Positions 3,082 through 47,467 of a stretch of 64,000 nucleotides of DNA are shown here, piece by piece. How positions within the stretch are numbered: the first letter of the stretch is position 1; each line of letters begins with the position of its first letter. The translations under genes were made by a program, and so were the position numbers. Below the pieces are notes generated by a model. That model was not told where the DNA came from, ran no database searches, and saw nothing but the letters and a program-made list of their open reading frames with translations. The stretch comes from Hyaloraphidium curvatum SAG 235-1 (taxonomy: Eukaryota; Fungi; Monoblepharomycota). Location of the stretch: the NCBI GenBank assembly GCA_025558095.1, contig JAIVFI010000036.1, positions 62,001-126,000 of the forward strand, written 5' to 3'.

Positions 3082-4201
3082 AGGGCCCCCCTGACCCCGT
3101 TGCTGCTATCCCATCGCCAATATGTCCAAACAGACGCCCGCAAAGGCTCAAATTTTCGAAATATAGGCCGTACAGGTTGATATAGGCTGATATAGGCCGA
3201 TATATAGGGGGACCAAGGCCGCGAGCAGCAGAGGGGGCAAAGGGTGCCATAGGCTGGAATAGGCCGCTATAGGCCGGCAAAGGACGATAAACGACGGCAA
3301 AAGACGACACATGAGGACAAAATGAACGATTCTGGAGCGTTTTCAAAGAGCTGTTTACGTGGGTGTGTTGCCGGTGGAGACATTCGGCCGAGCCCGGCCG
3401 ACCCGGGTCGGCGGTCCCGCCGGCTGTCCGCCTCATCGCGGCGGCGGCCCGCAGAGCGCATGTACGGCAAAACAGGTCTAGGCGAGGAGCGCCGTGGAGC
3501 GCAGATTGTCGCAGGAAGTTGGACCGATGTGCTGAGTTTGCGCGACTCGCGCGCGGGAGCGGAGTTCGACGCGCGTTCGGAGTTCGCGTCGCTCAATTCC
3601 CACCGGGTAACGCGGAAACCATGGAGCTGCGCCGGTCCTTCCACGCAACGCGTGCTGGTGCAGAGCGCTTTTAGGTTGGAGGATCGCGGCGTTCAGTTCT
3701 GGCCACCTCCTGGAGTTAGCCGGACCTCCCGCCCAACGCCGGGTCGACATTCCTGGTCTACATTCCTTGTCCACATCCCATTACCCTGGGCACTCTCCGG
3801 TAGAAAAAGACGGAAAACATCAGGTAGAAAACGCCTTGCGAGGCGCGTCGCGCCCTCGCGGGAGCGGTAGGAATGGGTGGTTCGGACTTCGGACATTCGT
3901 TACCAACCGGCAACATTTGCCGCGAGAAGTCCGATGAGCGAGACCGGTCCCCGGACGTTGGAGAATGCTCGTAGAACCATTTTGGATTGTAAAGGTGTAA
4001 TATAGGCAGATATAGGCAGCCATAGGCGCCATAGGCCGGCAAAGGGGGTCCAAAGGGCACCAAGGGCGGAACAGGCCGGCATCGGGAAATCCCGCGAGCG
4101 GTCGATATACGCAGCCATAGGCGGTCATAGGCGGGCCATAGGCTTGACATAGGATGCCATTGGGCCACAGGGGATAGCAGCAACGGAGTCAGGGGGGCCC
4201 T
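3082..4201. mobile_element. Non-autonomous TIR DNA transposon (MITE-like), 1120 bp
   Basis: 31-bp TIRs at 3082-3112 and 4171-4201 (30/31 identical, AGGGCCCCCCTGAC[C/T]CCGTTGCTGCTATCCC); flanking direct repeat CCTCT at 3077-3081 and 4202-4206; no credible ORF; subterminal ATAGGC arrays. Confidence 0.9.
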
Positions 4202-12478: not shown

Positions 12479-13195
12479 TCAGTTGATTCCTCTTGCCACT
12501 GGGATCAGTTCATTGTCTTCGCCATCCTCCACGCTCCCGTCTTCTCCACCCTCTCCATCATCCTCGTCGACATCATCCCACTCGTCCTCCGAATCTTCCC
12601 CGTTGCCCTCCTCTTCCAACGCGAGCTGCGCCGCCAGCTGCTCCGGGAGCGAGGTGTCAACATCGGCCCCGGCCGCCTTCAGATGCTTCAAAAGGTCCGT
12701 TGATAGGAAGGATGAAAGCATTTGCCCGCCAAACTTCCACAAGACCACGCAGTTGTTCCTCGACAAGGCGTCGATTGCCTTTTTTTTAAAATGCTGTGGT
12801 CTCAAAGGTACAAAGGTGTCGGCCGACAGCTGCAAAGTCCGCAAGGGCAATCTGTAGATCGGCGACGGACGGTCAGCTCAACGACAAGAGATCACTTCCA
12901 GAGCGTCCACCGTTTCCTTTTCGTGCTGCACGCCAAGGAAGCGCACCATGTGCCGGCACGAGATGGCGCCGTGCGGGAACCACGGCAGCCCGACGGAGAT
13001 ATCGCGGAGGAGCTGACATGCGCTCTCGACGTGCAGACGGGTTCTGAAAGCGGCGCGAGCGCGGGGAACGGCGTCCTCATCGGGCAGAAGCATGTCGGAG
13101 AACGCGGCGGCCAGGATTTTGGCAATGACTTCCGTCGGAAGGGCGAGGAGCGCGAAGAGGTGCTGCAGATGTCCGGAGTCGGACAAGACGGGCAT
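12479..13195 (-). pseudogene. Internally deleted paralog of the 15569-17140 F-box-like gene
   Basis: Both ends are similar in protein (LPTEVI.K.LAAAFSDMLLP; VDTSLPEQLAAQLALEE), but the middle ~0.9 kb is missing and the halves are out of frame. Confidence 0.7.
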
Positions 13196-13697
13196 TTTTT
13201 TGGGCTTCCGAGCAAACGGCGGTCTTTGCTGGCGTGATGGGTGATCCTGGAGGACAGAGAGTTTGCATGGAGGGGCTTTCGCGCGTCGTCGCGTTCTCCG
13301 TCGCTTTCCCGTTGTTCGGGCTCCGCGTCACCTCGCTTCATCCACCTAATCTTAGGCGCTTTATTCGTCTTGCAAAGAAGGAGATTCTGTTGCAAAACAA
13401 CATCCCTTGGCCAACATCCCCATTTCCTCATCGCCATCGTTGTACAGACCAAAGGCAGATTTATTCCCCAGCAATTGTCATTGTGGATCAGTCTATGGAC
13501 GATTCATCCACTGCCTCCGAGTTTCCGTCTTCTCCGGCCTCCGGCGTCTACTTCTCCGTGGACAGGAAGGCGAGAGCAATGGGCAGCAGAACTTCCACGA
13601 GACCACGCTTGAGTGAGGAGAGAGGAGATAGGCCCAGCATATAGGCGGCGCCAAGCTTAGCCACCGGGTGGGCACCGAAACCGCAAACCACCCAACG

Positions 13698-15489
13698 ATG
13701 CCCGACGGCGATGCCTCTGCGCCCAGCGGCGGCGACGTGCCCTACGTCCAGCCGACGACCTTCCCGCCTCTTCTCGAGGTGCACGGCGGGCGTCACGGCA
13801 ACATCTACCAATGTGCGGCCTCCCGTGTCTCCCGCCGCGCCGCGAGTGCCAATCCGACCCCGCAGGGCTCGCCGACCGCGCGGATTACAATTCTAGTCAC
13901 GGGGCTAATGGACTTTGGAGGGTGCACGACGGATTGTATGATTTGAACGAGTTTGTCGACAAGCACCCAGGTGGGAAGGAATGGTTGGAGCTCACGAGGG
14001 GGCACGACATTACCGAGGTGGGGGGGCCGCAGCCGGCAACGAGGGGGTGCCGAAAGGGCGCATCGGCTATCCTGTTGGCTCGGGCGGAGGTCTGACCAGC
14101 ATTCTGCCAGCTCTTCGAGTCGCACCACCCCGACATCGAGCCCGTGCGCAAGATACTGGAGAAGTACCGCCGCGGGACCGCAACCTGGCCGCGCGAGTCG
14201 CCTCTGACCTTCAAGGTGATTACCTTATCCTCCCCTCGACTCGAAGCCGGCTAACGGTCTGAACAGCCTGACGGCTTCTACTCCGTCCTCCGCGAGCGTG
14301 TCGTCAAGACCATCAAGGAAAAGGGCACCGCTCCCAAGCTCTGGAGCAAGCTCTTTGTCGACGCCCTAGTCATCTCCTACCTCGCCTGCGTTATCCGCTC
14401 CGCCCGCCGCGGCTCTCCCGCCTTCGCCGCCCTCGCGGGGCTGCTGGGGGGATTCATCGGCTTCGCGGGACACAACTACCTCCATCAAAAGAACAATTTC
14501 AGGATGTGGTACGAGGAGCTGACGGGGGGCAGCCATGAGACGTGGCGGATCCACCATGCCATCGCGCACCATCCCTATCCCAATTGCTCGCTCGATGTCG
14601 AGTACACCATGTTCGAGCCCGAGCTCTTGTTCTTCCCGACCCTCGCGCGGCGGAGCCCGGACACGCCGGTGCTCAACTTCCTGCGCGTGCAGAAGTTCTA
14701 TCTGGGCCTTGGGGCCAAGAGTGCCGTTCTGACGCTCCTGGGAATGCTGATGGGGAAGGTGAAGCCGAGGAGTTGGCAGAGCTTGTTGACGTACGCGACA
14801 TGGGCGGCGATGATCGCCATCAGAATGAGGTCGCCGGGAGCGAATGGGTGGAAGGGGGCGCTGCAGGCTACGTGCGTGTCGTGATGCTGGTTGATCTCCG
14901 CGCGCTGATCGTCTTCCTGGCTTGAATCCAGCGGACTCTACTTGCTCATGAGGACCGTCGCGAGCTACTACGGCATCTCCATGGGTCTCTATGCCGGTCA
15001 GTCTGCTCTCTACCCCAGCGGAACCCCAGACCTCCAGCTCACTTGTTTGCCCCACCCCCAGGCCATCACTCGGACTTCATCTACCGGCAAGACGACGCGT
15101 ACGCCCCGCCCCTTGACTTTGGCCTGTACCAGCTCGAAGCGACGGCCGACCGCGTGGAGGTCTACTCCTCCACCTCGGTCCTCTCCCTCCCCGGCGTCCT
15201 CGTCACCCTGGGCGACCACACGATGCACCACCTCTTCCCGACCATCGACCACGCGTACCACCGCTTCCTGTACGCCGACCTCGCGCGGACGTGCAAGGAG
15301 TTTGGGGTCAGGTTCGAGTTCACGACCCTGTGGGACATGATCAAGGGGTTCTACACGTCGCAGTCGAGGACGGAGCTGAATTCCGAGCCGAGGCGGGTGG
15401 GGAGGAGGGGGGAGGGGAAGGCGTACAAGGGGTGGGTGGACCCGAAGATGGGCGGGGTGGAGGGGTGGGCCGACGGCTTGCCTGAGTGA
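13698..15489 (+). CDS. Cytochrome b5-fused fatty-acid-desaturase-like protein; multi-exon
   Basis: [21 protein letters not shown] (b5); His boxes [21 protein letters not shown]. Confidence 0.85.
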
Positions 15490-15568
15490 GAGGGCCTGGC
15501 TCTGGGTATCGCTTATCTTTGGATCACATAGAACGGAACTCGGATTCGTGCGGCAAACATCTTCGAGC

Positions 15569-17140
15569 TCAGTTCACGGTCGCATCCTCCACGCTCCCGT
15601 CTTCGTCAGCTTCATTCTCGTCGACGTCCTCCCACTCGTCCTCCGAGTCGACTGCGCTAACCCCCTCTTCCAACGCCAGCTGCGCCGCAAGCTGCTCCGG
15701 CAAGGAGGTATCGACATTGGCCCCATCTCTCCTCAGCTGCTCCAAGAATTCGGCAGCCAGGAAGGATGACATCCTGTTGCTGCCGAGCTTCCAGACGACG
15801 GCGCAATCACCCCTCGACACGACCGCGATCGCCCTTTCGAACCGCTCGTAGAGAACCAGGTTCGCCGGATCGACGCCGCGCCCAGCGTTTAGCAGCTCCA
15901 CCGTGGGCGTGCACGCGATCGACAGGGTCTCGAGGCCGCCACGCACGAGCGCTTCCAGCTCCCGGTCACCGTGCACGAGCAGCCCGGCCTCGAGGACGTT
16001 GGTGAAGCCGTTGCTCATCAGGTGGCGGAGCTTGGGGCAATGCGCGCGTAGCTGACCGAAGCGCGGCAGGCCGGGCCCGTGCACGGTGAGGATGTCGAGC
16101 GAGGGGAACAGCGGGCCGTGCGTGGGATCGACGAGGTCGAACGAGGAAGGCGAGGCGAAGGCGACGCCGCCGTGCTGGTCGGGGCAGAAACACGGGGGGT
16201 AGCGCAGGCCGATCTTGCGGATCTCGGGGAACGGGGCGATGGGCTTCCGGGGAGCTGTGACGCGGATGTTGTCGGTCTCGAGATTCCAGAGGTGCCGGCC
16301 GACGGCTGCGAGGTCCGCGAACGGGATCTGGTGAGGCCGACAGTTAGGTGAGCTGCCACACTGGAGCCGTGTCGACCATACCGTGGCCTTGTTCGTGCAC
16401 GGCGCCATGATGTGGTTGATCTTGAGCTCGCGGAGCGCCTCGCTTCCCCTGAGCCCGCCCAGCGCAGCGCCGATCGCCTGCTCTACAAAGCGCCCGTCGT
16501 CCCCGGATCCGTTCCCTCCGATCGCCAGCTTGAAGGAAACCATGTCCTTGGCGCAGGCCGCGACGACGTCCGCGAGCTGCTGGTGCGACATCTCTTCGTT
16601 GCGCCTTTCGAAGTCCAGGTAGACGTACTCGACCGACCAGCCCCTGATGAGCGGCTCGTACAGGGCTTCCTCGCAGCTTGTGATGGTCAGCGACCGGATG
16701 ATCGGCAGCGTGGCTCCTGCGGGCGTCTTGATATCCCTCGCCGCCTCAATCAGCCTCGCGGCAACGTCCTTCCGGCAGCGTATCCCGAAGTCGAAGCCTT
16801 GCACACCGCGGAACCTGCGCGGCTCGCCAATGAAAAGCACTTCCATGGCCTGTGTGGTCCTCTTCTGACGGCGCTGGTGCAGAAGGCGGAGCATCTGGGG
16901 GAACGAGATGTCCCCGTCGGGGAACCACGGCAGCCCGACGGAAATCTCTCGAAGGAGCCGACACGTGCCCTCGACGCGCAGGCGAGTCCTGAAGGCGACG
17001 CGGGATCGCGGGATGGCGTCGTCGGTGGGCAGGAGCATGTCGGAGAACGCGGCGGCGAGGACCTTGGAAATGACCTCGGTCGGCAGCAAGAGGAGCGGGA
17101 AGCCGCAGCAGAGACCACAGGAATCGGTCGAGTTGGACAT
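15569..17140 (-). CDS. F-box-like / LRR-like protein with acidic tail
   Basis: LLLLPTEVISKVL N-terminal motif; LRELKI, LDILTV, CPKLRHL repeats. Confidence 0.6.
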   Translation of the reverse strand: MSNSTDSCGLCCGFPLLLLPTEVISKVLAAAFSDMLLPTDDAIPRSRVAFRTRLRVEGTCRLLREISVGLPWFPDGDISFPQMLRLLHQRRQKRTTQAMEVLFIGEPRRFRGVQGFDFGIRCRKDVAARLIEAARDIKTPAGATLPIIRSLTITSCEEALYEPLIRGWSVEYVYLDFERRNEEMSHQQLADVVAACAKDMVSFKLAIGGNGSGDDGRFVEQAIGAALGGLRGSEALRELKINHIMAPCTNKATVWSTRLQCGSSPNCRPHQIPFADLAAVGRHLWNLETDNIRVTAPRKPIAPFPEIRKIGLRYPPCFCPDQHGGVAFASPSSFDLVDPTHGPLFPSLDILTVHGPGLPRFGQLRAHCPKLRHLMSNGFTNVLEAGLLVHGDRELEALVRGGLETLSIACTPTVELLNAGRGVDPANLVLYERFERAIAVVSRGDCAVVWKLGSNRMSSFLAAEFLEQLRRDGANVDTSLPEQLAAQLALEEGVSAVDSEDEWEDVDENEADEDGSVEDATVN

Positions 17141-17453
17141 TGTTTTCGGTTTTCGAACGAGCGGTGGCCCTTTCTGGCGTGATGGGCGGTTCTGGAGGTC
17201 CGAGAGTTTGGAGGCGCTTTTCTCTTGTCCGCGGAGGTATAGTCGGAGGGCGCAGGCTGAACAGCGACACCCATCAAGGCGCTCTATGGCGCGCGACAGA
17301 AAGAAACATGCAGCAGTGTCATTTGCAGAACGGCGCTGACTCTCTTCGTATCGCGTATCACAAGCAATTTTCCTTACATCGCGCCACGTCCGCAGCTCCT
17401 CCATCGCGACACGAGACAATCCGTAACTCCGTCACTACGCTGCCAATTCCCAG

Positions 17454-36209: not shown

Positions 36210-36852
36210 TCAAGTGCCGCTGGCAGCCGTGCTGTACTCTGGGGCCAGGTAGAGGCCGACGGCCGGCCCGTGCGCCGAGAGGAAGGTCACAAGCCACGAA
36301 GCCCGCGCGGCCCCATCCGCAGATGGTTCCACGGAGGATCGCATGGCGTCCACGAGGTCAGCAGTCCCGCAGGGGTGCACGAAATAGTAAGGGGTGCCGT
36401 AGATTGGATGTTCCTTTGGCAGGGGTGAGAAGAGGAAAGAAGGCTCGAGTAGGGCCGGCGGACCCACAGTCTGCGAGACAATGACATCGCCGCCTGGAAC
36501 TGATTCTTTCCCTTCCGTCTTTGGTCGCAAGAGCAGGTCGTCCGCGTGCCCGCCCCCGTCTGGACGAGACGGTCAAACGGTGATCCTGAACGCGCCAAAC
36601 GCGACCCGCACCGGCACTGCACACGTTGAGCAGCAGCATGGGCACCGCGAACGAGCTGCTGAACACGACGTGGTACGTCCAGGTCCGGACGTCCCCCGAT
36701 TCCGCGGTCCGCACGACCTCCTTCGCCAAGTGGCCGTCGGGCCCGCCGCGGGGCGACGGACGCGTCGGGATCCACTTCCACCCGTCCGCGAGGGAATCGG
36801 ACACGTCGATAAGCAGCTTCGCGTCGCGCTTGAACTGTTCCAAGGGCGTCAT
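36210..36852 (-). CDS. ATG10: Ubiquitin-like-conjugating enzyme Atg10; multi-exon
   Basis: YHVVFSSSFAVPMLLLN, VSQT|EHPIYGTPYYFVHPCGT (catalytic HPC), WLVTFLSAHGPAVGL. Confidence 0.85.
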
Positions 36853-36942
36853 ATGAGGGCGCGCGCCGATCAACATGTCAACAAAGCTGCCTAGTCGCAC
36901 ACATCGCCTCTGCTACTAGCTGTTTCCGCCGGCAGCGCCCCA

Positions 36943-38050
36943 ATGCCAGTGGCCTTGGCATCTCCATCTGCAAACTCTGCGCCTCGGGCTTCTTCACAAC
37001 TACCTGTGCCCCGGACGCCAATGTTGGTGGACGGCCCCGCCATCGCAACTCGGCTCAAGCAGACTGGGAAGCTGAGCTCGGCGGAGATTTCTGCGTCGTT
37101 GGGAGTACATCGCACGACCTATTTTCGTTGGATCAAGTGGGCATCGCTGCCCCCGGCATCGAGAGAGGGAGTTCGCAAGGTCCGGAGCCGCCGCAAGGTC
37201 ACGGACCAGATGGTCCAGGACATCGTACACGAGGCAAAAAGCCAGGTCAGGGTCACCCAGCAGGAGCTAGTTCTTTTTCTGGCAGAAAAGTACGGGATCC
37301 GCGTCTCCCAGCAGCACGTTTCGCGGCTGCTGAAGGCAAATGGCGTCACTAGGAAGAGGCTCACCGTCAAGTCTTCCGAGGCCTTACGGCAACCGGAAAG
37401 GCATCTTCTGTTTCATAGTCGCATCGAGAATGTGCCTATGGAACGCATGGTCGCACTGGACGAAACGGCTTTCGAGCTCAACGACCCGGGCAGCCACGGG
37501 TACTCGGACCGCGGAAGCCGCGCTGTTGTCTACCTCCCGCGGAATAGAGGTCCAAAGGTGACTCTGTGTCTCGCAGTGTCACCAAGTCCTCGTCCGGGAG
37601 CAGTTGCTGGAACGGTGATCTCGTATGTGATCTACCGTGGCAATATGAACACGGAGCGATTCTGCGCTTTCTTGAGGTCTGTTAAGGCAGACGGACAGGG
37701 CCCCAAGAACGCGCTGAACATTGTGATTGACAATGCTGGTTACCATGGATCCCCTTTGAGGGCAAAGAAGACCGCAAATGGTACTGCGATTGTAGAGAAC
37801 ACCTCCGGCAAATCGTTCCTCGCGGTTCAGGCGGTGGCGAAAGCCAACAACCTCAACCTCGTGTACCTGCGACCCCGTACTCCCGAGTTCAATGCGAGTG
37901 AGCACGTGATAGGGCGGTTGAAGCGCCTTGTCCGGCGAGACTGTCCCTCCACTGTGGCCGATCTGATTGACGCTGTCGAGAGGGCGATACGAATTGTTGG
38001 GGAGAGCGATCTCTGTCCCACTTTTCGGCACTGCATCAAGCTCAGCGCGG
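36943..38050 (+). other. IS630/Tc1-like transposase module (two HTH + DDE_3)
   Basis: ISASLGVHRTTYFRW, GIRVSQQHVSRLLKANGVTRK; ALDET (D at 37459), IDNAGYH (D at 37729), TPEFNASE (E at 37900). Confidence 0.92.
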
Positions 38051-41000
38051 AAGAGAAGGCGCGCATTCAGCGGGAGATGCTTCGGTCCGACAACCTTGGT
38101 TCCACGAGCGGGTGCATACAACCGGAAACGGCAACTGGCGAGATCACGGGAGACACAAACTCGACCCGCATGGACACCGGACCGGGTCCCGGGGCCGCGC
38201 CCAGGAACGCGGTGGACGACGGCATCGCTGCTCGAGAAGCGGCCCGCCTGCTGCAGGAGGTGGGGAACTCGTCGCCGTCGTCATTGACGCGTGCCGACCT
38301 CCGTTTGACTTCCCAGGCCCGGGAACTCGGAGTGGCCGAGGTCGACGTCCACAAGGCCTACGATGTGAACCAGCTCTATGGCCGACTACGAGGACTCAGT
38401 AATGGAGGTGCTTTCGGATCGGCGTGGAACACGTTTCTGGACGAGCTGCAGAACGCCCGCGCCACCGCCTCCAAGGACGTCATCGGCACCCTCACCTCCC
38501 TCCCTCCCGACCAGTTCCGCGGAATATGCTCCGCAGTCGAGAAAGGCAAAGGCAAGGAGGTCCGCGCGGCCCTCTGCCGGAAGCTGCGGAACTTCGTCGA
38601 GCGACGTCGGCTCCCCGCGCCCGTCGCCGACGAACCATCGCCGGCCACCGCGGGCACCCCTTCCGGCCTCTCGCCGCCTCCGCCGCTCTTTCCAACTGTT
38701 TTAGCGAACCCGATTTTCGCTCCAGCCGTTGTCGGAGCCCCGGGGGCGCAGCTGGACGCTCTGCTGGACTACGCTCTGGAGCCGACCGTGCCCAAGGACC
38801 TGCGTGAGGCTGTCAAGTACGCGTGCTGTGCCGGGCTTTCCGACCTGGACCAGGGTCGTCCGGACGGCAGTTACTCGTCCCTCTCCGCGACGAGGAAGGA
38901 ACGACTTTTTGTCTCGCGCCTGGTGGCGGTCGACCGTGAAGGAGGCTTCCACCGCTGGACGGCAGCGACCGAGATCCGTCTGCGTGGGCGGCTGATGGCG
39001 AGTGATGCGGCTCGTTTGGATGATTTCGTCCATTCCGTATTCCTTGCTCGAGTGCGGCACTTCGTTCGCCAGCCGGAAGCCGGGCTCATACCCGTGGAGG
39101 ACTTCGAGCTCCCAGCCCAGACCCACCTCCGCCGGCCGCAGAACTGGCGCAAGATCCTGGAGGACGCCCTCGGCGCGCTCAAGAACGCGTCCGGGAAAGC
39201 CCTGTGGGATCGGAGGAGTCGTTCGCTCGAGGTTGCGCTCGCCAGCCTGACTCTGGAAGAGCGCATGGCGCTCGTTGTCCGCACGGACTTGCCCAAGGAC
39301 ATTGCCTTTCAGCAGGCTGAACAGCGCCGCATCTTCTTCGAAACCTTCCTCTGGGGCCCCATGAAGGCCAACGAGGCGCTCCTGGGCATACCGGATCGTG
39401 GTCCGGTGCCCGCGCTGGTGAGCAACGTTCTGGCTTCCAGCTCCAGCATTCTGGGCTGACGGTGCACTCCTCGCAGCCGCTGACCTTCTACGAGATCTTC
39501 CAGCCCACGAAGGGGCTAAGAGGCGTGAGCGAAAGGGCGGACGCGGACCTCGGCTCGTTCTTCGACAAGGCTTTGGCTGCTGTGCACGGAGAGGAGGGGC
39601 GCTCGGTCCTGTTTGAGTTGATCTTTTCTGGCCACCCGATGCGCGACCATTTGCTGGACTATTGGGGGTTCGATTCGCTCGTGAACCCTGTCAGCGACGC
39701 CGCCCGTCGCGCGAGCGTCGCGTTCCACCTGAAGTTGGACGCGCTCGAAAAGGCCTTTGACGCCAAGCGCGTCGACATCTGTTCCCTCGGATGCCTTTAT
39801 TGTCCCTTCACAGTGGCGGTCGAGGGCCGGGTGCCGGCTCGGAACCCGGAGCGGAAGAGAAAGGACGCGAACGGCGCTACGGCCGGCAAGTCGTCGGATC
39901 AGCGCCAGTACGACGCTGGCGTGCGGCTCGGGCATCACGTCGCGGGGAAGCACTTTACGTGCCAGATCTGCCGCAAAGACGGCAGGCGTGTCACGTTTGC
40001 GTTCGAGGCCAAGTACCGGGAACACGTGGAAACCCAGCATGCAGATGCTCCTCTCCAGTAGGTCTCCGCAAGAGATCCACACGGGGTCATTACTCATCCT
40101 CGCTGTCCCAGCCTCGTCATCCCCCGGGCCTTCACATCACGGCGCGGACTGCTGCTCGCCCAGGTCAACTACATTGTGCCGCACGCCTGCCGCACTCAAG
40201 CAACGGAAGCGGAGAGTGCTGCCGCCGGAGCAACGGCGATGGACGTAGACGGGGCGAAGGACGAAGGTTGCGCGGCAAAGGAGCCCAGGTGCCACCTCTG
40301 CCTGTCGACAACCCGGGGACACCGGCGAGGATGCCGGCCGGCTTTGCGGCAAGCTGCGGAGAATGCGTACAAGGCCGTCGGGGATGCGGAGCACGAGCGG
40401 CACGTGACCGAGCGCGCCATGTCGACAACCTGGTTCTTGCCCGAGGAGGCCCTCCACCCCTGGGCGATCGAGCCGCTCAAGAGCGTGGGGCTGCTCATTT
40501 CCCGCGCCGCAACCGGTGCGGCGTCCTTTGCAAAGCTCGTCTGGACCTCGGCGATGCTGGCAGTATACAACGGTCTGCTGGACAACCGCTCCGTTCCCCC
40601 TGCCATCCTGCGCAAGTTCCCACCTTCCGTCGTAGCGAACATGGCGATGCTGGTGGTTTTGAACGAGGGGGCGCTAAACGCCAACGCAGGCACACGCCGG
40701 AGGAAGAAGCCGCGCGGGGACATCGGCACGGATCCGGGCGTGGAGATCACCGCAACTGGCGCGGGACTCGGCACGGTCACGGAAATGGCGGAGGACGATG
40801 ACGAGCCCGCTGCCGAAGATGGGGAAGAAGAAGAGGAGGGCGGAGATTTCGGTGAATACGCCGGGTTCGCGGACTTCCTGGCCGGCGAGGGGGAAGCCGA
40901 CGGACCTGAACACGCGCTGGAAGCTCTGGGCGCCGGCTTCGGTGGCGACGGGATGGCCGACGACGGCGAGGTTTTTGACGGTCCCGGCACCCTCTCCGTG

Positions 41001-44000
41001 GAGGAGCATAACGCGGCGGCTGCGGTTCTGCGGGCGGTAGTCACCGACGCCTACCACGAGCTGAGGCCGGACCTGGCTTCCGAGTTTGCCGACTGGCACC
41101 ACTACCTGCTGCGCGGCCCGCTGCTCGGTTACTTCAGGAATCTTGCCGCAGGACGCCTCCGCACCGTCCCCATCCAGCTGCGCAAGGAGCTTTCGGACCT
41201 GATCCGCACCTTCCTGAAGGAGGAGCTGGACAACGCCGTGAAGCGGCAAAAGATTGGCCACATCTTGCGCTGCGTGCTGGCCAAGCTCGGGACGGGTGAT
41301 ACGAACTTTTTCGGCACCAGCTTCGCGGCCTTTGGCTGCAGCCCCGAGTTTGACGCGGAGGCTCGGCTTCGCCTGACCTGGCTACTCCTGCCGCTATCCG
41401 GACGCTCGCTGAATACGATCATGGACCTGCGGGAGCCCCGCGACCGGCCAAAATGGCCAGCGACTGTCCTACAGCGCGTGATGCTTTCGCTGAGGAAGCG
41501 GGACGTGGAGCTGAAGCGGTCGGCGATGGCGACGCGTATCCGCAGCGTCGCCATATCGCCGCAGAAGGCGCGCGGCAAGTCGCAGGACGAGGAGGACGCA
41601 AAGGCGGCGTACCTGCTGGATCTGCGCGACCGGGCCCAAGCCGAACTCCGCCGGATGCCGCCTGAAGCGATCAGGCAACTGCAGGAGGAGGAGCGGCACG
41701 AACTGGTCGAGACGTATGTGGCTGACAAGCTGCAGTTGCGTGGCATCCCCGTCGAGATCCCCTCCGTGCAGGGGGTTGGCATCCACCCCACAAAGAGCCG
41801 CTTTTGGGGGCCGGAGTGGACGGAGGGCCTGGACAAGGAGGCGCTGTTGCAGCGCTACGAGAGGGAGCTGCTCGATGAGAGGCAGAGGGCGCGTCAGCTG
41901 AGCACAGCTGAACTTCGCCTCGCGCAGACGGGCAAATGCGCGGACGCGGACGCGTTTGGCTCCGAGGCTCTCTTTCAGACTATGCGGCTGCGGGAGGAGC
42001 AGATCGCGAGGCTCAAGATGCGGCGATCGTCAAGCGTTGCCTCGACCGGATCTGAACCAAGCCCGACGGCCTTGCCGCAAAGCTCGACACCGACACCTTC
42101 ATCATCGAGTGCGGCGGACAGCGCTCGGCGCGTCGCCGCCAGCTTCACCACCGAGGCCGCAATGGACGTTGACCCTGCGAACGAGGCGGAGGGTGGTGGA
42201 CCCTCTGCGACTCTGTTCCGCGGAAGTGCCGCCGTGGACCTGCTTTGCGCGGACATGGAGTGCTCCGACTCGGAAGACGGCAATGTTGAGGCTGCTGACG
42301 ACTTCCCCACGATCGGCGGCGGGAAGCAGAAGTCGAAAAAGGGCCGACCGATCCGAGTGGACCCCAAGCCGTGGCCGAAGAACGGGGCACCCAAGCGATT
42401 CCATGGCTACGTCACGACGGGGAAGAAGCGGGCGCCGCTGTCGCCCGAGGGCAAGGTGAAGAAGCGATTGGGGAAGTCACGTGTGGCGGCTCGCCGATGG
42501 TCCAGCGCGGCCGGAGGGAGCGGGGAGAAGAGCGTGGGTGACGCGTTCTCTCCCGTGGTGAGGTCGTCATTCTGATACGTTTCATGAACAACAGCAGTCA
42601 AGGACCCAAGGCGGCACCACCGGAGGGACCTGGGCCGCGGGCGGGATCCGGCCGCTCTTGACCAGGATTTCCCTCACCCCCATAGCCCTGTACATAACCG
42701 CGAGCGATCTGCCCGACCTCTTCAAGATGCTCGGTGTTAAGCTCGGCCCCTTGGCACCGGACGTGGCCAAGATCAACCCCGATTACCTGTTTGGACACCT
42801 GTTCAACAATGGCAACAAAATTGTTCAGGACGAGCGTCTTTTCCGCCTCCATCAGGAGGGGAAGCGCTCCCCGGCAGGGCACGCGGACGCCTCACGGCCG
42901 ACCCTTCGCCGGTCGGGCGATGCGCTGCACTGCTCGTGCATTGCTGGCATGGTTCTTCGTGGCCCAACCTTTGCCATTGTCGAGGAGCACATGGCCGTCG
43001 TGCCCAGGGCTTCGAAGCCGAAGGCACCGCAGCAGCAGTGGACGGAATCTGAGCCCAAAGTGACGCCGCCCTTGGATTGTAGGTCCCCGTTCTTTCATCG
43101 GAGCTTCCGCGCCTAACCTGCTTCCCAACAGTCTTCCTCAGCGCGCCATCGCCCGAGCCGTGTTGGGAGTGTACGGAGCCAGAACAGCACGCCCACTGGC
43201 ACGACTTTTCGGCCCAAGATTCGTTCGGGATGCCCGCGGTCCTCGTGCCCACCCTTCCGCACGGTGCTCCGGACCCCCCGCCGGGCATGGCCGTCGTTGA
43301 TGGTATGTCATCCTTGCCGCTGCACTCAGCGCTGCTGATGTGTTCATCTTCAAGCTCACGGCTGGCTCCATGCTGGCGGGACCGTCTTCTTCCCCCCGCC
43401 CGCCATTACCGACGATGCCGAGCACTTGCTGGTAGATCCCGACTCGACTCCTTTCACGTGGATGGACGTGGATCAGGATTGGATCGGGCTCCCGCCTCCC
43501 GCCTCCATCCCCCCCGAACCCCCACCCGCAACATCACCGAACTCCTCCACATCGGTACCTTCCGAGTCTCCATCCTCCTTCACTCCCACCCTCGCTCCTC
43601 CGCCTCCTCTTCCCATCCCGACGGCCTCGCCTGTGGGTGCCGCAGGATCTTCTCCGCTTCCGCCCTCGTCTCCACCTGCCCCTGCTCAGCCTCCAACCTC
43701 CGCTCCTCTCCCACCGCACCCTCGCTCTACGTGCTCATCGATACCTCGTCCGCCTGTTGACTGGAAGACCTCTATACCGTGCTACAACTTTAGCCGGAAG
43801 GCGGACGCGGAGAAGCTAATGCCGCACTTCCTAACAATGGCAACGGAAGAGGAGATGTGGGATGCCGCCCAACGGGGCCTTCCCGTTTCTGGTGGCGTTG
43901 TCTTTTGCGATCCAAATCGCTGGTTCTATATGCAGGGCGGTCGACGACTTGCACCCGCGTTTGTGGCCCGCTGCCTGGACCCCGGCCCGGGGAGACGGTT

Positions 44001-45524
44001 CGACTTCGCCAACACCCACCTACCCGAGCTTTCGGAGAAGATCGTCGTCACCAACCCGGACGGCACCACATCGACATACATTCTTGTGCGCGCCAACGTG
44101 CCCAAGGGGTGCATCTCTGCGGGCCGCATCAAGGACATCCGGCTCGAACACTCCTGCGACGAGACGGCCCGCGTTGCGCGGGCGACGCAGGCGGCGCCGC
44201 GCAACATCCGCTGCCGACACCACCCGGACGGCGCCGCCAAGCTCTCGGCTCACCGCCCGACCAACCGCGGGCATGCGAACCGCGACGAGAAGCTGCGGAA
44301 GGCCGAACGGAACTGGACGCTTTTCCCCAACCCCGACGGCGGGTCCGATGCCGACGGGGACAGGTTCTGGGGTGGTATCGCCGGCTTTGGGCGCGCCGGC
44401 GTCCGCCAGCTTCCGGAGCTCATTCTCGGCGTGCCTGGGGACCTCGATCGCCGGATGTGTGGTTACCAGCACGCTTCTAGGAAACTGGCGTCGCTGCGCA
44501 AGTCGCACACCCTCCCCTCCGGCCTGACAATCGAGGCTTGGGAATCGGCACTGCCTTCGCAGCGGACGACGAGCTGCGAGCAGTTTCGCAAGTACGCCCA
44601 TGCCATCACGAAGGAGCTCTGCTCCGTCGTCAAGTTCTACTGCAATGATGAGATATGGTTTGTTCACGGCCAGCCTGCGTGATTGGGATGCAGCCTTCCT
44701 GACGCCTTCTTTTGCAGCCGCGACCGCGTCCGTACCATCCGGAGGCGTCGGCAGGTGCTCGACTGGATCGCCCGCGACCTGTGTCGCAACCCGTACTCGG
44801 GCAAGTTCGATTCCCAGACCACCTTCGCCTATGGCGCCGCCCGCTTTGGTCACGCAAGCAAGGGCGGTCCGGCTTCTCGGATTGTGCAGTTCAGGGCCGC
44901 GCTCGCGGCCGTTGGAATCCTCGTTTTGATCAACGAGTACCTGACGAGCCAGATGTGTTCAAAGTGAGTTTTCCCTCGTACTTCGCGCCTGATTTCGCGG
45001 CATTGATCGCCCTCTCGGCAGGTGCCTGACGACCTACGTTGTCCCCATCACCAACCCCGGGTGCCGTGGCGAGATCCGGGGCGCCAAGTACTGCCCGACC
45101 TGTCGCACGTACTGGATGAGGGACGTCAACAGCTGTCGGTCCATCGGGTACCTGTTCTGGTTCGCGATCGCTACCGGTGGCGAGCGCCCCTGGCCGTTCA
45201 AGCCTGACACCAGGAGGCGCAAGCCGTCGAAGCCGGCCGCGAAGTCCGCTGGTACGCTGATTTTGCTCGCTTTGGAGCGTGTGAGCTGATGGCGTTGCAG
45301 GCACCACTCTTCAGACCGGATCCGTTCCCACCGTGCCCAAGCGTCCTGGTGCGGTGGCGCGGGGACGCGGCTCTGCCAAGAAGGTCAGGCTGGACGGCCC
45401 CGGCCGTGGGTCTTCTTATCTTTCTTCTCTACAAATTGGCGGGTGGTGCGAGCCCTCGCCTGTGCCCGATTGTGGGCTTGATCGAGGTGGAGTCCGAGAG
45501 GACCGCCTTTTTGGTGGCAAGTAG
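36943..45524 (+). CDS. Predicted single ~2,711-aa transposase / zinc-finger / Fanzor1 fusion protein, 9 exons
   Basis: Introns 39418-39476, 40058-40111, 42534-42594, 43079-43131, 43303-43354, 44658-44717, 44964-45021, 45252-45300. All are GT-AG and 49-61 nt, and each splice links adjacent ORFs in frame. Exon total is 8136 nt. Confidence 0.75.
43960..45210 (+). other. Fanzor1/TnpB RuvC + Zn-ribbon nuclease module (split by 2 introns)
   Basis: RCLDPG (RuvC-I, D at 43978); KFY...RRRRQVLDWIARDL bridge helix; FAYGAARFGHASKGGP; INEYLTSQMCSKC (RuvC-II, E at 44935); YCPTC..YWMRDVNSCRSI (RuvC-III, D at 45122); GERPWPF. Confidence 0.9.
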
Positions 45525-45559
45525 CATTCCATATGTGTGTAGCCACCCATTTGGAGACT
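45428..45559 (+). ncRNA. Candidate Fanzor omega-RNA (scaffold plus adjacent guide)
   Basis: Directly 3' of the RuvC exons and at the element end; hairpins GTCC-GAGA-GGAC and GCCC-GATTGT-GGGC; long-range pairing CAAAT/GGGTGG with CCACCC/ATTTG. Confidence 0.55.
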
Positions 45560-45565
45560 GCCGCC

Positions 45566-47467
45566 ATGGCCATGACGGCACCGGGCCTCGCTTCCGCCCT
45601 CCTGAGGACTGTGTTGCGGACTTCACCTTGCTATTCTTCTCCTGCACGGACATTCGCTGCCTCTGCTGCCGCCCGGGACGGGGCAGCCTCGGGCGGACCG
45701 CCGCCGGAACGCTTCGACGCCGACAACGTCCACAACATCTACCTCCCCCTGTCGGCGTTCCTCGCGAACGATCCCGTCCCTTGGCAGCGCCGCAACCGCC
45801 CGTCGATGGCGGTGCTGGGCCACGACTCGTGGCACGAACCCGTGGCGCTCCAACCGCTGCAGCCCAACAAGATGCCGCCGGTGCCCAAGCAGTACTACGG
45901 CGCGCTGCCGACGGATACGGCACAGCAGTTTGCGCAGCTGAGGGTGCTGCTGAGGACGAGGGGCGATCCGGCGCTGGCGTGGGCGCTGTTCCGGTTCGCG
46001 ACGGAGAGCGAGGGCCGCGCTTCGTACGCGGCCCGGAAGCGCCGCCCGAAACCCGGCGATCCTTCCTCGGCGGATGACGCGGGCCACGCAACGAGCACGG
46101 CGGCCGAACGGGCCCGCTCGCCGGCCACGAGCCTCCAGCCCGACGACCGCACCGGCATGCTCGAACTCCTCCTCCTGCACCCCAACCCCCTCTTTGCCGT
46201 CCTCGCCGCCATGTGGGTCATGGCCTGCCCCGCCTACGCCCCCGTCGGCGATTCCTCCACCCCCGTGCCGCTGGACCGCCGCGACCTGCGGCTGCTCCTG
46301 TCCGTGCTCGCGAGGGGGGCGCAGCCGGACTACGCGCGCTACGTGTACGCGAAGCATTTCATCGGGCCCGAGGACGAGGAGGGGGCGGCATCGCGGTCGG
46401 TGCAGGCAAAGGGGAAGGCCAAGCCCGACCTGGTGGCCGCAAAGGCGGTGCTTGCTGCAATGGTGGACGGCGACCTGCGCCGCGCGGAGGGGCACGAGGA
46501 GCTGGACGCACCCAAGCGCTCCAAGTGGCTCGCTGAAACGGGGTTCTCCCGCGACTCCGAGTTCGACGGCGTCCTCGGCTGGTGGTCGTGGATGTGCGGG
46601 GACCTCGACGCGGCGCTGTCGGAATCCACCGCGGACCAGGGCAGCGGTTCGCCCGCCGCCCGCCGGCAGAAGCTGTGGCGCCAAGGAGACGGCGAAACCT
46701 GGGCGCTCCTCCTGACCTGGCTGGCCAGAACGGACCGCCGCACGGCGTCCCGCATCTGGGACTTCCTCCGCCTCCCCGGGCCCGAAGGCGACGGATGGCG
46801 GGACCGCCTCCTCCGCGACCGCCGCGTGTGGGAATCCGCCTTCCCGCTGTACCTCCAGCCGACATCCACGCAGTCTGCCCTCGCCGACGCCGCCCTCGCC
46901 TTCCTCGAGGAGATGCTCCCGCGGTGCCCCCCCGCCGAAACCACGCACGACGCGATCCTCTGCGGCATCGTCGACGCCACCCTCGCGTCGGCGGAGAAGG
47001 GCGCCAGGGAGGGCGTGCAGGCCGCCGAGTGGGCGTGGCGGGAGCTCGTCCTGCGTCCGCTCGTGCCCGGCGGGCCGGTGAGGCCGTTCCACAGCTCCGG
47101 CGAGGCGATGCTCAGGTTGTACGACCGCTATTCTGCCTCGGCGGCGGATGCGGAGCTGGAGGAATGCGCCGGGCGCGCGTGGGAGGTCTGGCAATTGATG
47201 GACGGGGAGCTGCGGCTCAAGCCGACGCTCGAGGCCGTCAACCGCGCTCATGCGGTGCTGCGAAGGGCGGCGAGGAGGCTCGGGGGGGAGGTGTGGCCGG
47301 GGAGGAGGGACGAGGTGGAGGCGATGCGGAAGGCGCTGGTGCTGAGGAGGGCCAAGGAGGAGGACAGGGAGGTGGAGCGGGCGAGGAGGCGGGATGGGGG
47401 TGGGAGGGGGGCTAGGCGGTATTCGGGGGCGGATGGAGGGGCAGGGCGGGGTGGACAGCGATATTGA
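45566..47467 (+). CDS. Hypothetical helical-repeat (PPR-like) protein, possibly mitochondrial
   Basis: Arg/Ser/Ala-rich presequence-like N-terminus; DGETWALLL, AWEVWQLM...LKPTLEAVN PPR-like segments. Confidence 0.5.
   Translation: MAMTAPGLASALLRTVLRTSPCYSSPARTFAASAAARDGAASGGPPPERFDADNVHNIYLPLSAFLANDPVPWQRRNRPSMAVLGHDSWHEPVALQPLQPNKMPPVPKQYYGALPTDTAQQFAQLRVLLRTRGDPALAWALFRFATESEGRASYAARKRRPKPGDPSSADDAGHATSTAAERARSPATSLQPDDRTGMLELLLLHPNPLFAVLAAMWVMACPAYAPVGDSSTPVPLDRRDLRLLLSVLARGAQPDYARYVYAKHFIGPEDEEGAASRSVQAKGKAKPDLVAAKAVLAAMVDGDLRRAEGHEELDAPKRSKWLAETGFSRDSEFDGVLGWWSWMCGDLDAALSESTADQGSGSPAARRQKLWRQGDGETWALLLTWLARTDRRTASRIWDFLRLPGPEGDGWRDRLLRDRRVWESAFPLYLQPTSTQSALADAALAFLEEMLPRCPPAETTHDAILCGIVDATLASAEKGAREGVQAAEWAWRELVLRPLVPGGPVRPFHSSGEAMLRLYDRYSASAADAELEECAGRAWEVWQLMDGELRLKPTLEAVNRAHAVLRRAARRLGGEVWPGRRDEVEAMRKALVLRRAKEEDREVERARRRDGGGRGARRYSGADGGAGRGGQRY

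Follow-up and report, generated by a model that had tools for sequence, protein, structure and literature searches.

CASTs are bacterial, multi-protein systems that use a dead nuclease and a TnsC spacer and leave 5-bp duplications. IS911 and IS30 favor targets similar to their own termini and insert a few bases from such an end-like site. The RNA-guided transposons described so far are all bacterial, multi-protein Tn7 derivatives (PMC11406308), and the role of Fanzor in transposition is still called unknown (PMC10530073). The Fanzor1-carrying Tc1/mariner elements PGv-1 and PUl-1 (Bao and Jurka 2013, PMC3627910) and the IS630-linked TnpB branch DDE-6 (PMC10691335) combine a 5' DDE transposase with a 3' Fanzor or TnpB gene ending near the right end, and have TIRs and a 2-bp duplication; the two proteins are separate, and the Mariner cases show TA duplications. 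SpuFz1 (Spu-1; PMC10432273; PDB 8GKH) lies alone in a 2.1-kb locus of which many ghost copies exist; its TAM, CATA, is directly beside the left end, and a candidate RNA lies at the right one. For p-MULT/TnGBS (PMC3942029), insertion has been reported to be oriented and anchored to a motif with no RNA involved; these use other transposase families and carry no Fanzor; p-MULT elements insert upstream of sigmaA promoters.

The window, i.e. the whole 64,000-nucleotide stretch of Hyaloraphidium curvatum DNA analyzed, contains a transposon with the gene order, right-end position of the nuclease, TIRs and 2-bp duplication of PGv-1/PUl-1 and DDE-6, but here both activities reside in one 2,700-aa protein and the duplications are variable. 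It is further set apart from those elements by its DD56E spacing, by TIRs that are short and imperfect, and by a target motif lying at a distance. Its features are listed below.

36862-36871, + strand: family-A target motif, consensus CGCGYCGATC, in host flank, at -32 to -23 relative to the initial G of the left TIR
36890-36891, no strand: left 2-bp target-site duplication CC, repeated at the right side
36892-45545, + strand: whole transposon, family A copy, 8,654 bp (ends set by comparing 5 copies)
36892-36906, + strand: left end, imperfect TIR starting TA-GTCGCAC (copy comparison)
36943-39417, + strand: exon 1, transposase and ~440-aa helical extension in one open frame (sequence comparison)
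37021-38088, + strand: Tc1/IS630-fold transposase, two HTH modules and DD56E core (Pfam, alignment, fold)
39477-40057, + strand: exon 2, linker carrying a pair of C2H2-like zinc-finger motifs (39% identity to family B)
40112-42533, + strand: exon 3, Cys/His motif, expanded REC-like helical region, acidic and Ser/Pro insertions (profile and homolog matches)
42595-43302, + strand: exons 4-5, REC/WED-like Fanzor1 segment, with intron 43079-43131 (profile match)
43355-45251, + strand: exons 6-8, Fanzor1 nuclease lobe (RuvC motifs, fold of a homologous copy)
45301-45524, + strand: exon 9, low-complexity tail and stop codon (splicing, spliced frame)
39418-39476, 40058-40111, 42534-42594 and 43079-43131, + strand: introns 1-4 (GT..AG joints in run X1 contigs)
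43303-43354, 44658-44717, 44964-45021 and 45252-45300, + strand: introns 5-8 (GT..AG joints in run X1 contigs)
45476-45545, + strand: candidate omegaRNA scaffold, extending to the right end (DNA-level conservation between families A and B)
45533-45545, + strand: right end, imperfect TIR ending GTAGC-CA (copy comparison)
45546-45547, no strand: right 2-bp target-site duplication CC, repeat of the left CC

The preliminary description had joined separate reading frames into a single gene of about 2,700 aa through eight in-frame GT-AG introns of 49-61 nt, and this structure held throughout: every joint was read spliced in the contigs of run X1, which are presumably RNA-derived (a guess backed by the spliced joints), the bin depths imply zero X1 coverage of the intron interiors, and script-based removal of the introns leaves an uninterrupted frame of 2,711 aa that opens at 36943 and ends with the TAG at 45522-45524. 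The more likely start codon is Met27 (37021), giving a predicted 2,685 aa, since the first ATG is lost in one copy and the homology to family B starts at Met27. The proposed mapping of the junctions to RNA was thereby borne out for all eight joints, and the span of the transcript was covered over 39330-45329, the region compared, rather than over 37000-45500.

A search for other genomic copies of the same fusion had been proposed, and such copies were found: family A has five near-identical copies in H. curvatum (differing 1-4 nt in 2,600) and the sister family B has ten. The transposase of B is 64% identical to that of A, and its single predicted frame of 2,653 aa has fewer introns, exons 3-5 forming one intron-free frame. 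Most copies were read at their ends and first 2.5 kb, where the exon 1 frame is open for 780-930 aa in 15/15. A stop between the modules in sister copies had been named as evidence against a fusion; none follows the DDE domain in these 15 copies, nor in the family D/C relatives, and the fusion is kept in at least three families. The 15 full-length copies across A and B are young, and no non-autonomous copies (MITEs or ghosts) with A or B ends were found in the genome. The TIRs match at 9/13 positions in A and 11/15 in B, and the terminal dinucleotides TA/TC/CA are part of the element and inherited with it, TA versus TC left ends tracking lineage within family B. The window copy, which sits between two head-to-head genes, shares with the C25 copy the absence of 9 nt just after 36924.

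The assignment of the N-terminus to the IS630/Tc1 group was upheld. Profile, homolog and fold searches, run per exon or with an unspliced natural locus as query, gave a Pfam DDE_3 match (E=3e-12) and, as top fold matches, Mos1 (E=9e-7, Z 12-13.6), Metnase and Sleeping Beauty, and both the HTH modules and the RNase H-fold DDE/D domain of IS630/Tc1/mariner are present. The catalytic triad is intact (codons at D 37459, D 37729 and E 37900), with 56 residues between D263 and E320 in place of the typical DD34-35E; the stretch leading from the second D to the E contains a conserved insertion of ~22 aa, common to all relatives in this genome. The transposase is conserved, with a pN/pS of 0.35. Transposase relatives outside this genome were absent from length-limited homolog searches, the last of which returned only an own-genome fragment, and from metagenome, viral and prokaryote scans, which weigh little for eukaryote genomes.

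The linker is homologous across families and, with a pN/pS of 0.66-0.74, under purifying selection. Pfam, the ESM Atlas and fold searches based on a low-confidence model yielded neither an identity nor a known DNA-binding fold for it, and exon 2 has a weak match in the unrelated sample L052. Exon 3 bears a weak profile match (E=0.01) to the region of the Fanzor1 TAM-reading helix, the Q/N residues of which are absent in family A, and has a homolog in the metagenome locus L055 (E=4e-6); the contigs of both giant Fanzor relatives, in L052 and L055, end before any transposase. In exons 4-5, the REC/WED-like Fanzor1 segment likewise has a weak profile match, in exon 4 (E=3e-4).

The RuvC active site was intact in four families. 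RuvC-I corresponds to the D-P-N at 43909-43917 (D2230), invariant in these families and the counterpart of SpuFz1 D383/N385 (PMC10432273), and it takes the role previously given to LDPG, which was rejected as a catalytic motif owing to its variation as LNPG, LDPR and LDSS. The RuvC-II E lies at 44935 (E2552) and the aspartate of the RuvC-III RD at 45122 (D2595). The Fanzor1 arrangement of an E six residues ahead of a C4 finger (PMC13565253) is thus found here within a D, E, D triad and followed by RD, the finger (first Cys 2559) being interrupted by intron 7. The distance of ~325 aa from the RuvC-I D to the finger exceeds the 125-275 of PMC3627910. Exon 7 has a pN/pS of 0.18 between A and B. 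SpuFz1 shares the D-x-N, E, D active site and the position of the E, and is the best fold match (E=5.7e-6) of the homologous C2 copy; a profile from that copy's normal-length relatives yielded 8e-45 for SpuFz1 versus 4e-8 for Fanzor2. The nuclease lobe is accordingly predicted to belong to the Fanzor1 clade rather than to Fanzor2/TnpB, in agreement with the Fanzor1 signature originally recognized from sequence motifs, for which a structural match now exists. The Fanzor part here spans ~1,500 aa. Taken together, splicing, the single frame of the sister family and the folds support a covalent joining of transposase and Fanzor1 in which each keeps an intact triad.

The insertion sites depart from those of Tc1/mariner elements. 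Variable 2-bp duplications occur in 12/12 copies with an intact left junction (CC, CG and CT in A; CC, AT, AC, CC, CG, TG, GC, AG and TG in B), which rules out both the TA duplication and long duplications, and TA specificity is lost in families A and B, the two in which duplications were read, the D/E-type right ends being truncated or missing. The remaining 3/15 copies carry junction deletions. In A and B alike, the element inserts with the left end first and at a constant spacing downstream of a motif particular to each family, i.e. in the oriented, fixed-distance manner that characterizes CASTs. The A motif is found in 5/5 copies, three in exact register and two shifted by junction deletions (p = 2e-4 without shifting), and that of B beats all 10,000 nulls (p <1e-4), these targeting statistics resting on 15 insertion sites. 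Conservation lies 21-34 nt upstream, the positions adjacent to the junction are not conserved, and no conserved TAM was found directly 5' of the insertion point, where SpuFz1 has its CATA. Flank-derived guides were rejected as a means of aiming new insertions, since 16-nt right flanks match the left flanks of other copies only randomly. The geometry of ordinary Fanzor homing fails here on these two grounds, and the lack of a TAM beside the insertion point also weakens donor-site re-cleavage, which had been entertained as the alternative role of the fusion.

In both families, the target motif, at 29 nt upstream, includes a stretch similar to the left end of the element itself. In B, the left-TIR 11-mer ranks 2 of 17,238 element 11-mers at the 29-nt register, and flanks match the left TIR at 53/99 positions (null maximum 43); in A the match is 18/33 (p = 0.008), with a rank of just 172-298 of 17,310. 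The flanks of every copy match the left TIR of their own family at least as well as that of the other. IS911 and IS30 likewise choose targets like their own ends, at a few bases versus 29 here, but come from other transposase families and have no Fanzor. Degenerate target positions show R opposite a putative guide G and Y opposite U, which would fit wobble pairing. At seed positions 5-6, family A targets hold an invariant AT versus CA in the left TIR; the B motif matches a hairpin 40-50 nt inside the right end slightly better than the left TIR; and pairing with the left TIR is poor beyond 4-5 nt. Both motifs are partly palindromic. At the right end, where SpuFz1 also has its candidate RNA, ~37 nt are conserved at the DNA level even though they belong to the coding sequence in A and to the 3' UTR in B; a 19-mer is exact in 15/15 copies and occurs nowhere else, and an 8-nt core recurs in families C and E. 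Folding z-scores of the candidate omegaRNA were not significant.

We propose, at somewhat less than even probability, that the Fanzor module anchors the transposase within one polypeptide in a CAST-like manner, choosing the site by motif. An active cut-and-paste transposon would encode one protein comprising a DDE transposase, a long linker and an expanded Fanzor1, with target choice handed from TA reading to the tethered module. This module would bind a GCGC-like motif in A and an AAGGG-like one in B as TAM, beside which a short, loosely paired guide seed would lie, and would hold the transpososome 25 nt past the seed start, so that the fused DDE domain would integrate the 8.6-kb element in fixed orientation through a 2-bp staggered joint. 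The likeliest guide would be a fixed one, not one taken from the flank: if an excised element circularised, an omegaRNA transcribed through its right-end/left-end junction would start with the left TIR, the sequence that the targets resemble. The stronger form, a natural single-polypeptide RNA-guided eukaryotic transposase in which TAM and guide seed pick the site and a change of RNA would retarget it, is tentative and rather unlikely. The earlier suggestion that the fusion couples recognition to integration gains real support from the fixed-distance, fixed-orientation motif and the lost TA duplication; right-flank guides match no target.

Motif significance, the shared 29-nt register, the agreement of the flanks with their own family's left TIR, the wobble-like degeneracy and the lost TA preference count for this Fanzor-anchored model, as does the absence of MITEs and ghosts, expected of a cis-acting machine. 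The retained nuclease would account for breaks scarred into left ends: three independent deletions in B overlap ~18-26 nt inside the left end, near the 16-21 nt cut window of SpuFz1 (PMC10432273), and support the model, against which stand the inner deletions of A at +32 to +49, outside that window. Neither a circle junction nor a small RNA was seen, and the insertion sites available number 15. Further points against it are the invariant AT of A, which a TIR-derived guide cannot explain, the low rank of A's left TIR, the slightly better match of the B motif to the right-end hairpin, the poor pairing beyond 4-5 nt, the partly palindromic motifs, which suit a protein dimer, the RuvC, intact here unlike in Cas12k, and the failure of engineered dTnpB or dFz2-TniQ fusions to target (10.1101/2025.08.27.672191).

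Targeting by protein only is the likeliest rival, itself rather unlikely: the helical extension or zinc-finger-like motifs of the linker, or a transposase HTH, would read a TIR-like, partly palindromic site and set the distance, and the fused Fanzor would cleave vacated donor sites again, using a guide from the flank and, instead of a neighbouring TAM, the same remote motif. It accommodates targets resembling the left TIR and, in B, the subterminal hairpin, the quasi-palindromic motifs with the invariant AT of A, the conserved linker, the intact RuvC and a right end that abuts variable flank like that of ordinary Fanzors; it meets difficulty in a linker lacking a known DNA-binding fold in our searches and in a remote TAM for which no precedent was found, and by itself leaves the fusion in at least three families unexplained. 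Tethering to host factors at promoter motifs, p-MULT-like and with no part for Fanzor in target choice, is improbable: the motifs of the sister families differ and covary with their own left ends, and the B 12-mer is not enriched (23 genomic occurrences versus 18 in the control), even though the window copy lies between divergent genes and the A 10-mer occurs 437 times, ~3x the base-composition expectation (estimated at about 130).

Very improbable is a continuous frame giving separate working products, whether by translation from a start inside the frame (Met410, for example), by early polyadenylation or by proteolysis; the element would then be a conventional transposon that carries a Fanzor and whose transposase is the unusual part. 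Contig depth climbs toward the 3' end, the linker has methionines, and no single read or contig was seen to span the whole gene, the X1 comparison covering 39330-45329; these points are opposed by the absence of stops after the DDE domain, the homologous linker under purifying selection and the single predicted frame of B. That the element enters as a patch at a break which Fanzor makes next to the TAM, with no integration by the DDE domain, is more improbable still: the A junction does lie 18-20 nt past the motif end, near Fanzor cut distances, and deletions mark some junctions, but the precise 2-bp duplication in all intact copies is a Tc1-type strand-transfer signature and the DDE residues and transposase are conserved.

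No described example of such a transposase-Fanzor fusion was found in the literature searched. Its parts are of known kinds, while the fusion and its targeting geometry fail defining tests of Tc1/mariner, OMEGA homing and CAST. Like type V-K CASTs (Cas12k-TniQ-TnsC-TnsB), the element unites a TnpB-family protein and a DDE transposase with oriented, fixed-distance insertion; it differs in being eukaryotic and one chain, in an intact RuvC instead of a nuclease-dead effector and in a distance of ~25 nt, with putative guide dependence, and no TnsC or TniQ Pfam domain was detected in any exon scanned. In this element the Fanzor is an integral part of the transposase protein, and an altered rule can be read from the insertion sites: no TA, one orientation and a fixed distance from a family-specific motif. 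With two young sister families using different motifs, the targeting question is directly testable by domain and RNA swaps. Because it always lands in the same direction and equally far from a short motif, the element is a candidate example of gene insertion aimed by RNA in a eukaryote under natural conditions. Should RNA determine the target, this would be the first CAST-like system from a eukaryote, and a single gene would suffice for targeted integration of large DNA; should protein determine it, a Tc1-type transposase that selects its sites and is fused to an active nuclease would still be undescribed.

The preliminary description had proposed that the separate plus-strand frames between 36943 and 45524 are exons of a single gene, and this structure was confirmed: all eight GT..AG joints were found in contigs of run X1 (presumed RNA) aligned over 6 kb (39330-45329), and the frame after intron removal is free of stops from 36943 to 45524 (2,711 aa). 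X1 bin depths in this interval drop in step with intron length, leaving no signal from unspliced RNA or from DNA. The X1 contig carrying joints 1 and 2 (6,636 nt) extends past the upstream edge of the interval, which is compatible with continuity of the gene and is no proof of one full-length mRNA. Since the first ATG is absent from one sister copy and homology with the sister family B begins at Met27, a product of 2,685 aa is likelier.

Homology and fold searches used single exons or natural loci as queries. As previously suggested, the N-terminal 360 aa comprise a Tc1/IS630-fold transposase (catalytic D173, D263 and E320), whose DD56E spacing is due to a ~22-aa insertion common to its relatives in this genome. 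Next come a helical extension and zinc-finger-like motifs, which are homologous across families and were not identified by any library searched; exons 3-5 gave weak matches to the REC/WED region of Fanzor1. The nuclease lobe of a homologous copy on contig C2 was predicted at pLDDT 80 with SpuFz1 as its best fold match, in agreement with the earlier Fanzor/RuvC assignment. The RuvC triad consists of D2230 (D-P-N), E2552 and D2595 and is preserved in four families; the SpuFz1 counterpart of the D-P-N is D383/N385 (PMC10432273). LDPG, formerly counted in the Fanzor1 signature, varies and was rejected as a conserved catalytic motif, the RuvC-I aspartate being D2230 instead. We regard the transposase-Fanzor fusion as real with high confidence.

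Searches with the transposase, the exon-1 extension, exon 6 and exon 7 returned the same 15 loci. Family A, which includes the element in the window, has five copies (1-4 nt differences in 2,600), and family B has ten (0-8 in 2,400). Family B is collinear with A and retains a single predicted frame of 2,653 aa; it has six introns, positioned as in A, and lacks introns 3 and 4. The parts follow one another in the same order in two more distantly related copies on C2. Identity between A and B is 37-84% per exon, with uncorrected pN/pS of 0.18-0.74 at near-saturated pS, lowest in RuvC-II and the transposase. The fusion is thus of old origin and conserved, and it has moved recently. A genome search found no MITEs of these elements.

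The H. curvatum genome (G000) holds at least 56 Fanzor-like matches, other long-ORF families among them, and in C2:358000-436000 several transposase and Fanzor elements are nested together. At C15:545136-553761 (L009, L025, L042), a family-B copy is nested in a related D-type transposase element, and that element is itself missing ~100 bp immediately internal to its left end. The long-spaced DDE transposase is also present in relatives at C23:297263-315274, C15:359125-378749, C13:321446-344218 and C3:874419-890460, followed 16-23 kb downstream by a same-strand Fanzor; in one of them an 822-aa first frame with a comparable extension survives. They may be larger members of this group, and several are broken. 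Other samples contain related giant Fanzors, whose 5' ends are missing there. An Amoeboaphelidium occidentale locus (L057, KAI3659768.1) encodes a 1,366-aa Fanzor-like protein with no adjacent transposase among the hits.

Comparison of copies placed the element ends as follows.

Ends of the family A and family B transposons
Window 36892-45545: family A transposon; left end TA-GTCGCAC, right end GTAGC-CA
Family B transposon: left end TA- or TC-GTTTCAC, right end GTAGC-TA

The terminal dinucleotides are inherited with the element, the TA-ended B copies forming one lineage. Outside them, a variable 2-bp duplication occurs in 12/12 copies with an intact left junction (for C35 it was judged by eye, across a 2-nt loss in the right terminal inverted repeat, TIR); in the remaining three the left junction itself has lost bases. 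The TA specificity that characterises the Tc1/mariner superfamily (PMC13565253) is gone from both families. All nine copies with a TA left end bear a deletion at or just inside it, one shared by two A copies, against a single additional base among the six TC-ended copies. A motif of ~37 nt near the right end is kept between the families, although in A it is part of the coding sequence and in B it is not translated, and it is the likely omegaRNA core; folding tests gave no statistical support to its candidate fold.

Two head-to-head host ORFs, 36358-36852 (-) and 45566-47467 (+), flank the element, and one looks Atg10-like by eye. An empty site would leave only ~60 nt between the start codons; transcription of the host genes may therefore begin within the element. 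Elsewhere in the window, 3082-4201 is a 1.1-kb stretch bounded on both sides by 31-nt inverted repeats (97% complementary), probably an unrelated small DNA transposon, and a tandem duplication at 12523-17210, diverged to 73-78% identity and spaced at 3.0-3.9 kb, probably represents paralogous genes.

With positions counted from the TIR's first G, family A left flanks carry CGCGYCGATC at -32 to -23 and family B left flanks AAGGGRYTK at -34 to -26, with no copy shifted (p = 2e-4 and <1e-4, respectively, including nulls from their own flanks). Right flanks are at most weakly conserved (p = 0.03 and 0.008 in the two families), which indicates oriented insertion, and the bases adjacent to the junction show no conservation, which leaves no ordinary TAM. 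Such motif-anchored, oriented, non-TA insertion is almost certainly real in B and very probably so in A. Right-flank guides matched other copies' targets no better than chance. From position -29 on, targets resemble the left TIR of their own family, strongly in B (rank 2/17,238; 53/99 matches against a null maximum of 43) and weakly in A (p = 0.008), where targets carry an invariant AT missing from the TIR. These tests were post hoc, the likeness having first been spotted by eye, and their independent element is the register common to both families. A D-type copy on C23 (L016) has a near-perfect family-B motif in its left flank, set 5 nt farther out from the end than it is in B; either the motif is common to both or it is the footprint of an old B excision.

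That the 2-bp duplication is precise speaks for DDE strand transfer, which is established for the Tc1/IS630 fold; something else sets the place and direction of insertion. Our best reading, held at somewhat below an even chance, is that the tethered Fanzor would bind the motif as a TAM plus short seed and, so anchored, position the transposase 25 nt beyond. A fixed guide could derive from RNA transcribed through the end-to-end junction of an excised circle. Such a guide would begin with the left TIR, matching the register found in targets, and does not account for the invariant AT of family A. Also against this reading, the nuclease, whose triad is intact, is not predicted to be dead. RNA-programmable integration in itself we consider less likely than not.

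The main rival, rather less likely than the best reading, is that protein reads the motif, through the linker or an HTH, with the Fanzor serving as a homing nuclease that uses the remote motif. Tethering to host factors would also direct insertion and appears improbable, separate products from the one frame more so, and repair into a Fanzor cut very improbable.

A Fanzor1 gene adjacent to a separate Mariner transposase gene, with TA duplications, has been described before (PMC3627910), as have IS630-linked TnpBs (PMC10691335). Text searches covering a 2026 review and the survey papers on Fanzor turned up no natural transposase-Fanzor fusion, and no paper found names Fanzor together with the genus Hyaloraphidium, most subscription journals and Repbase lying outside these searches. 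Unlike Tc1/mariner, the element has neither TA duplication nor the usual DDE spacing; unlike OMEGA homing, it has no TAM adjoining the junction; and it has neither the dead effector nor the adaptors of CAST. The closest likeness to its working is that of a CAST made as a single chain, or of an end-targeting IS.
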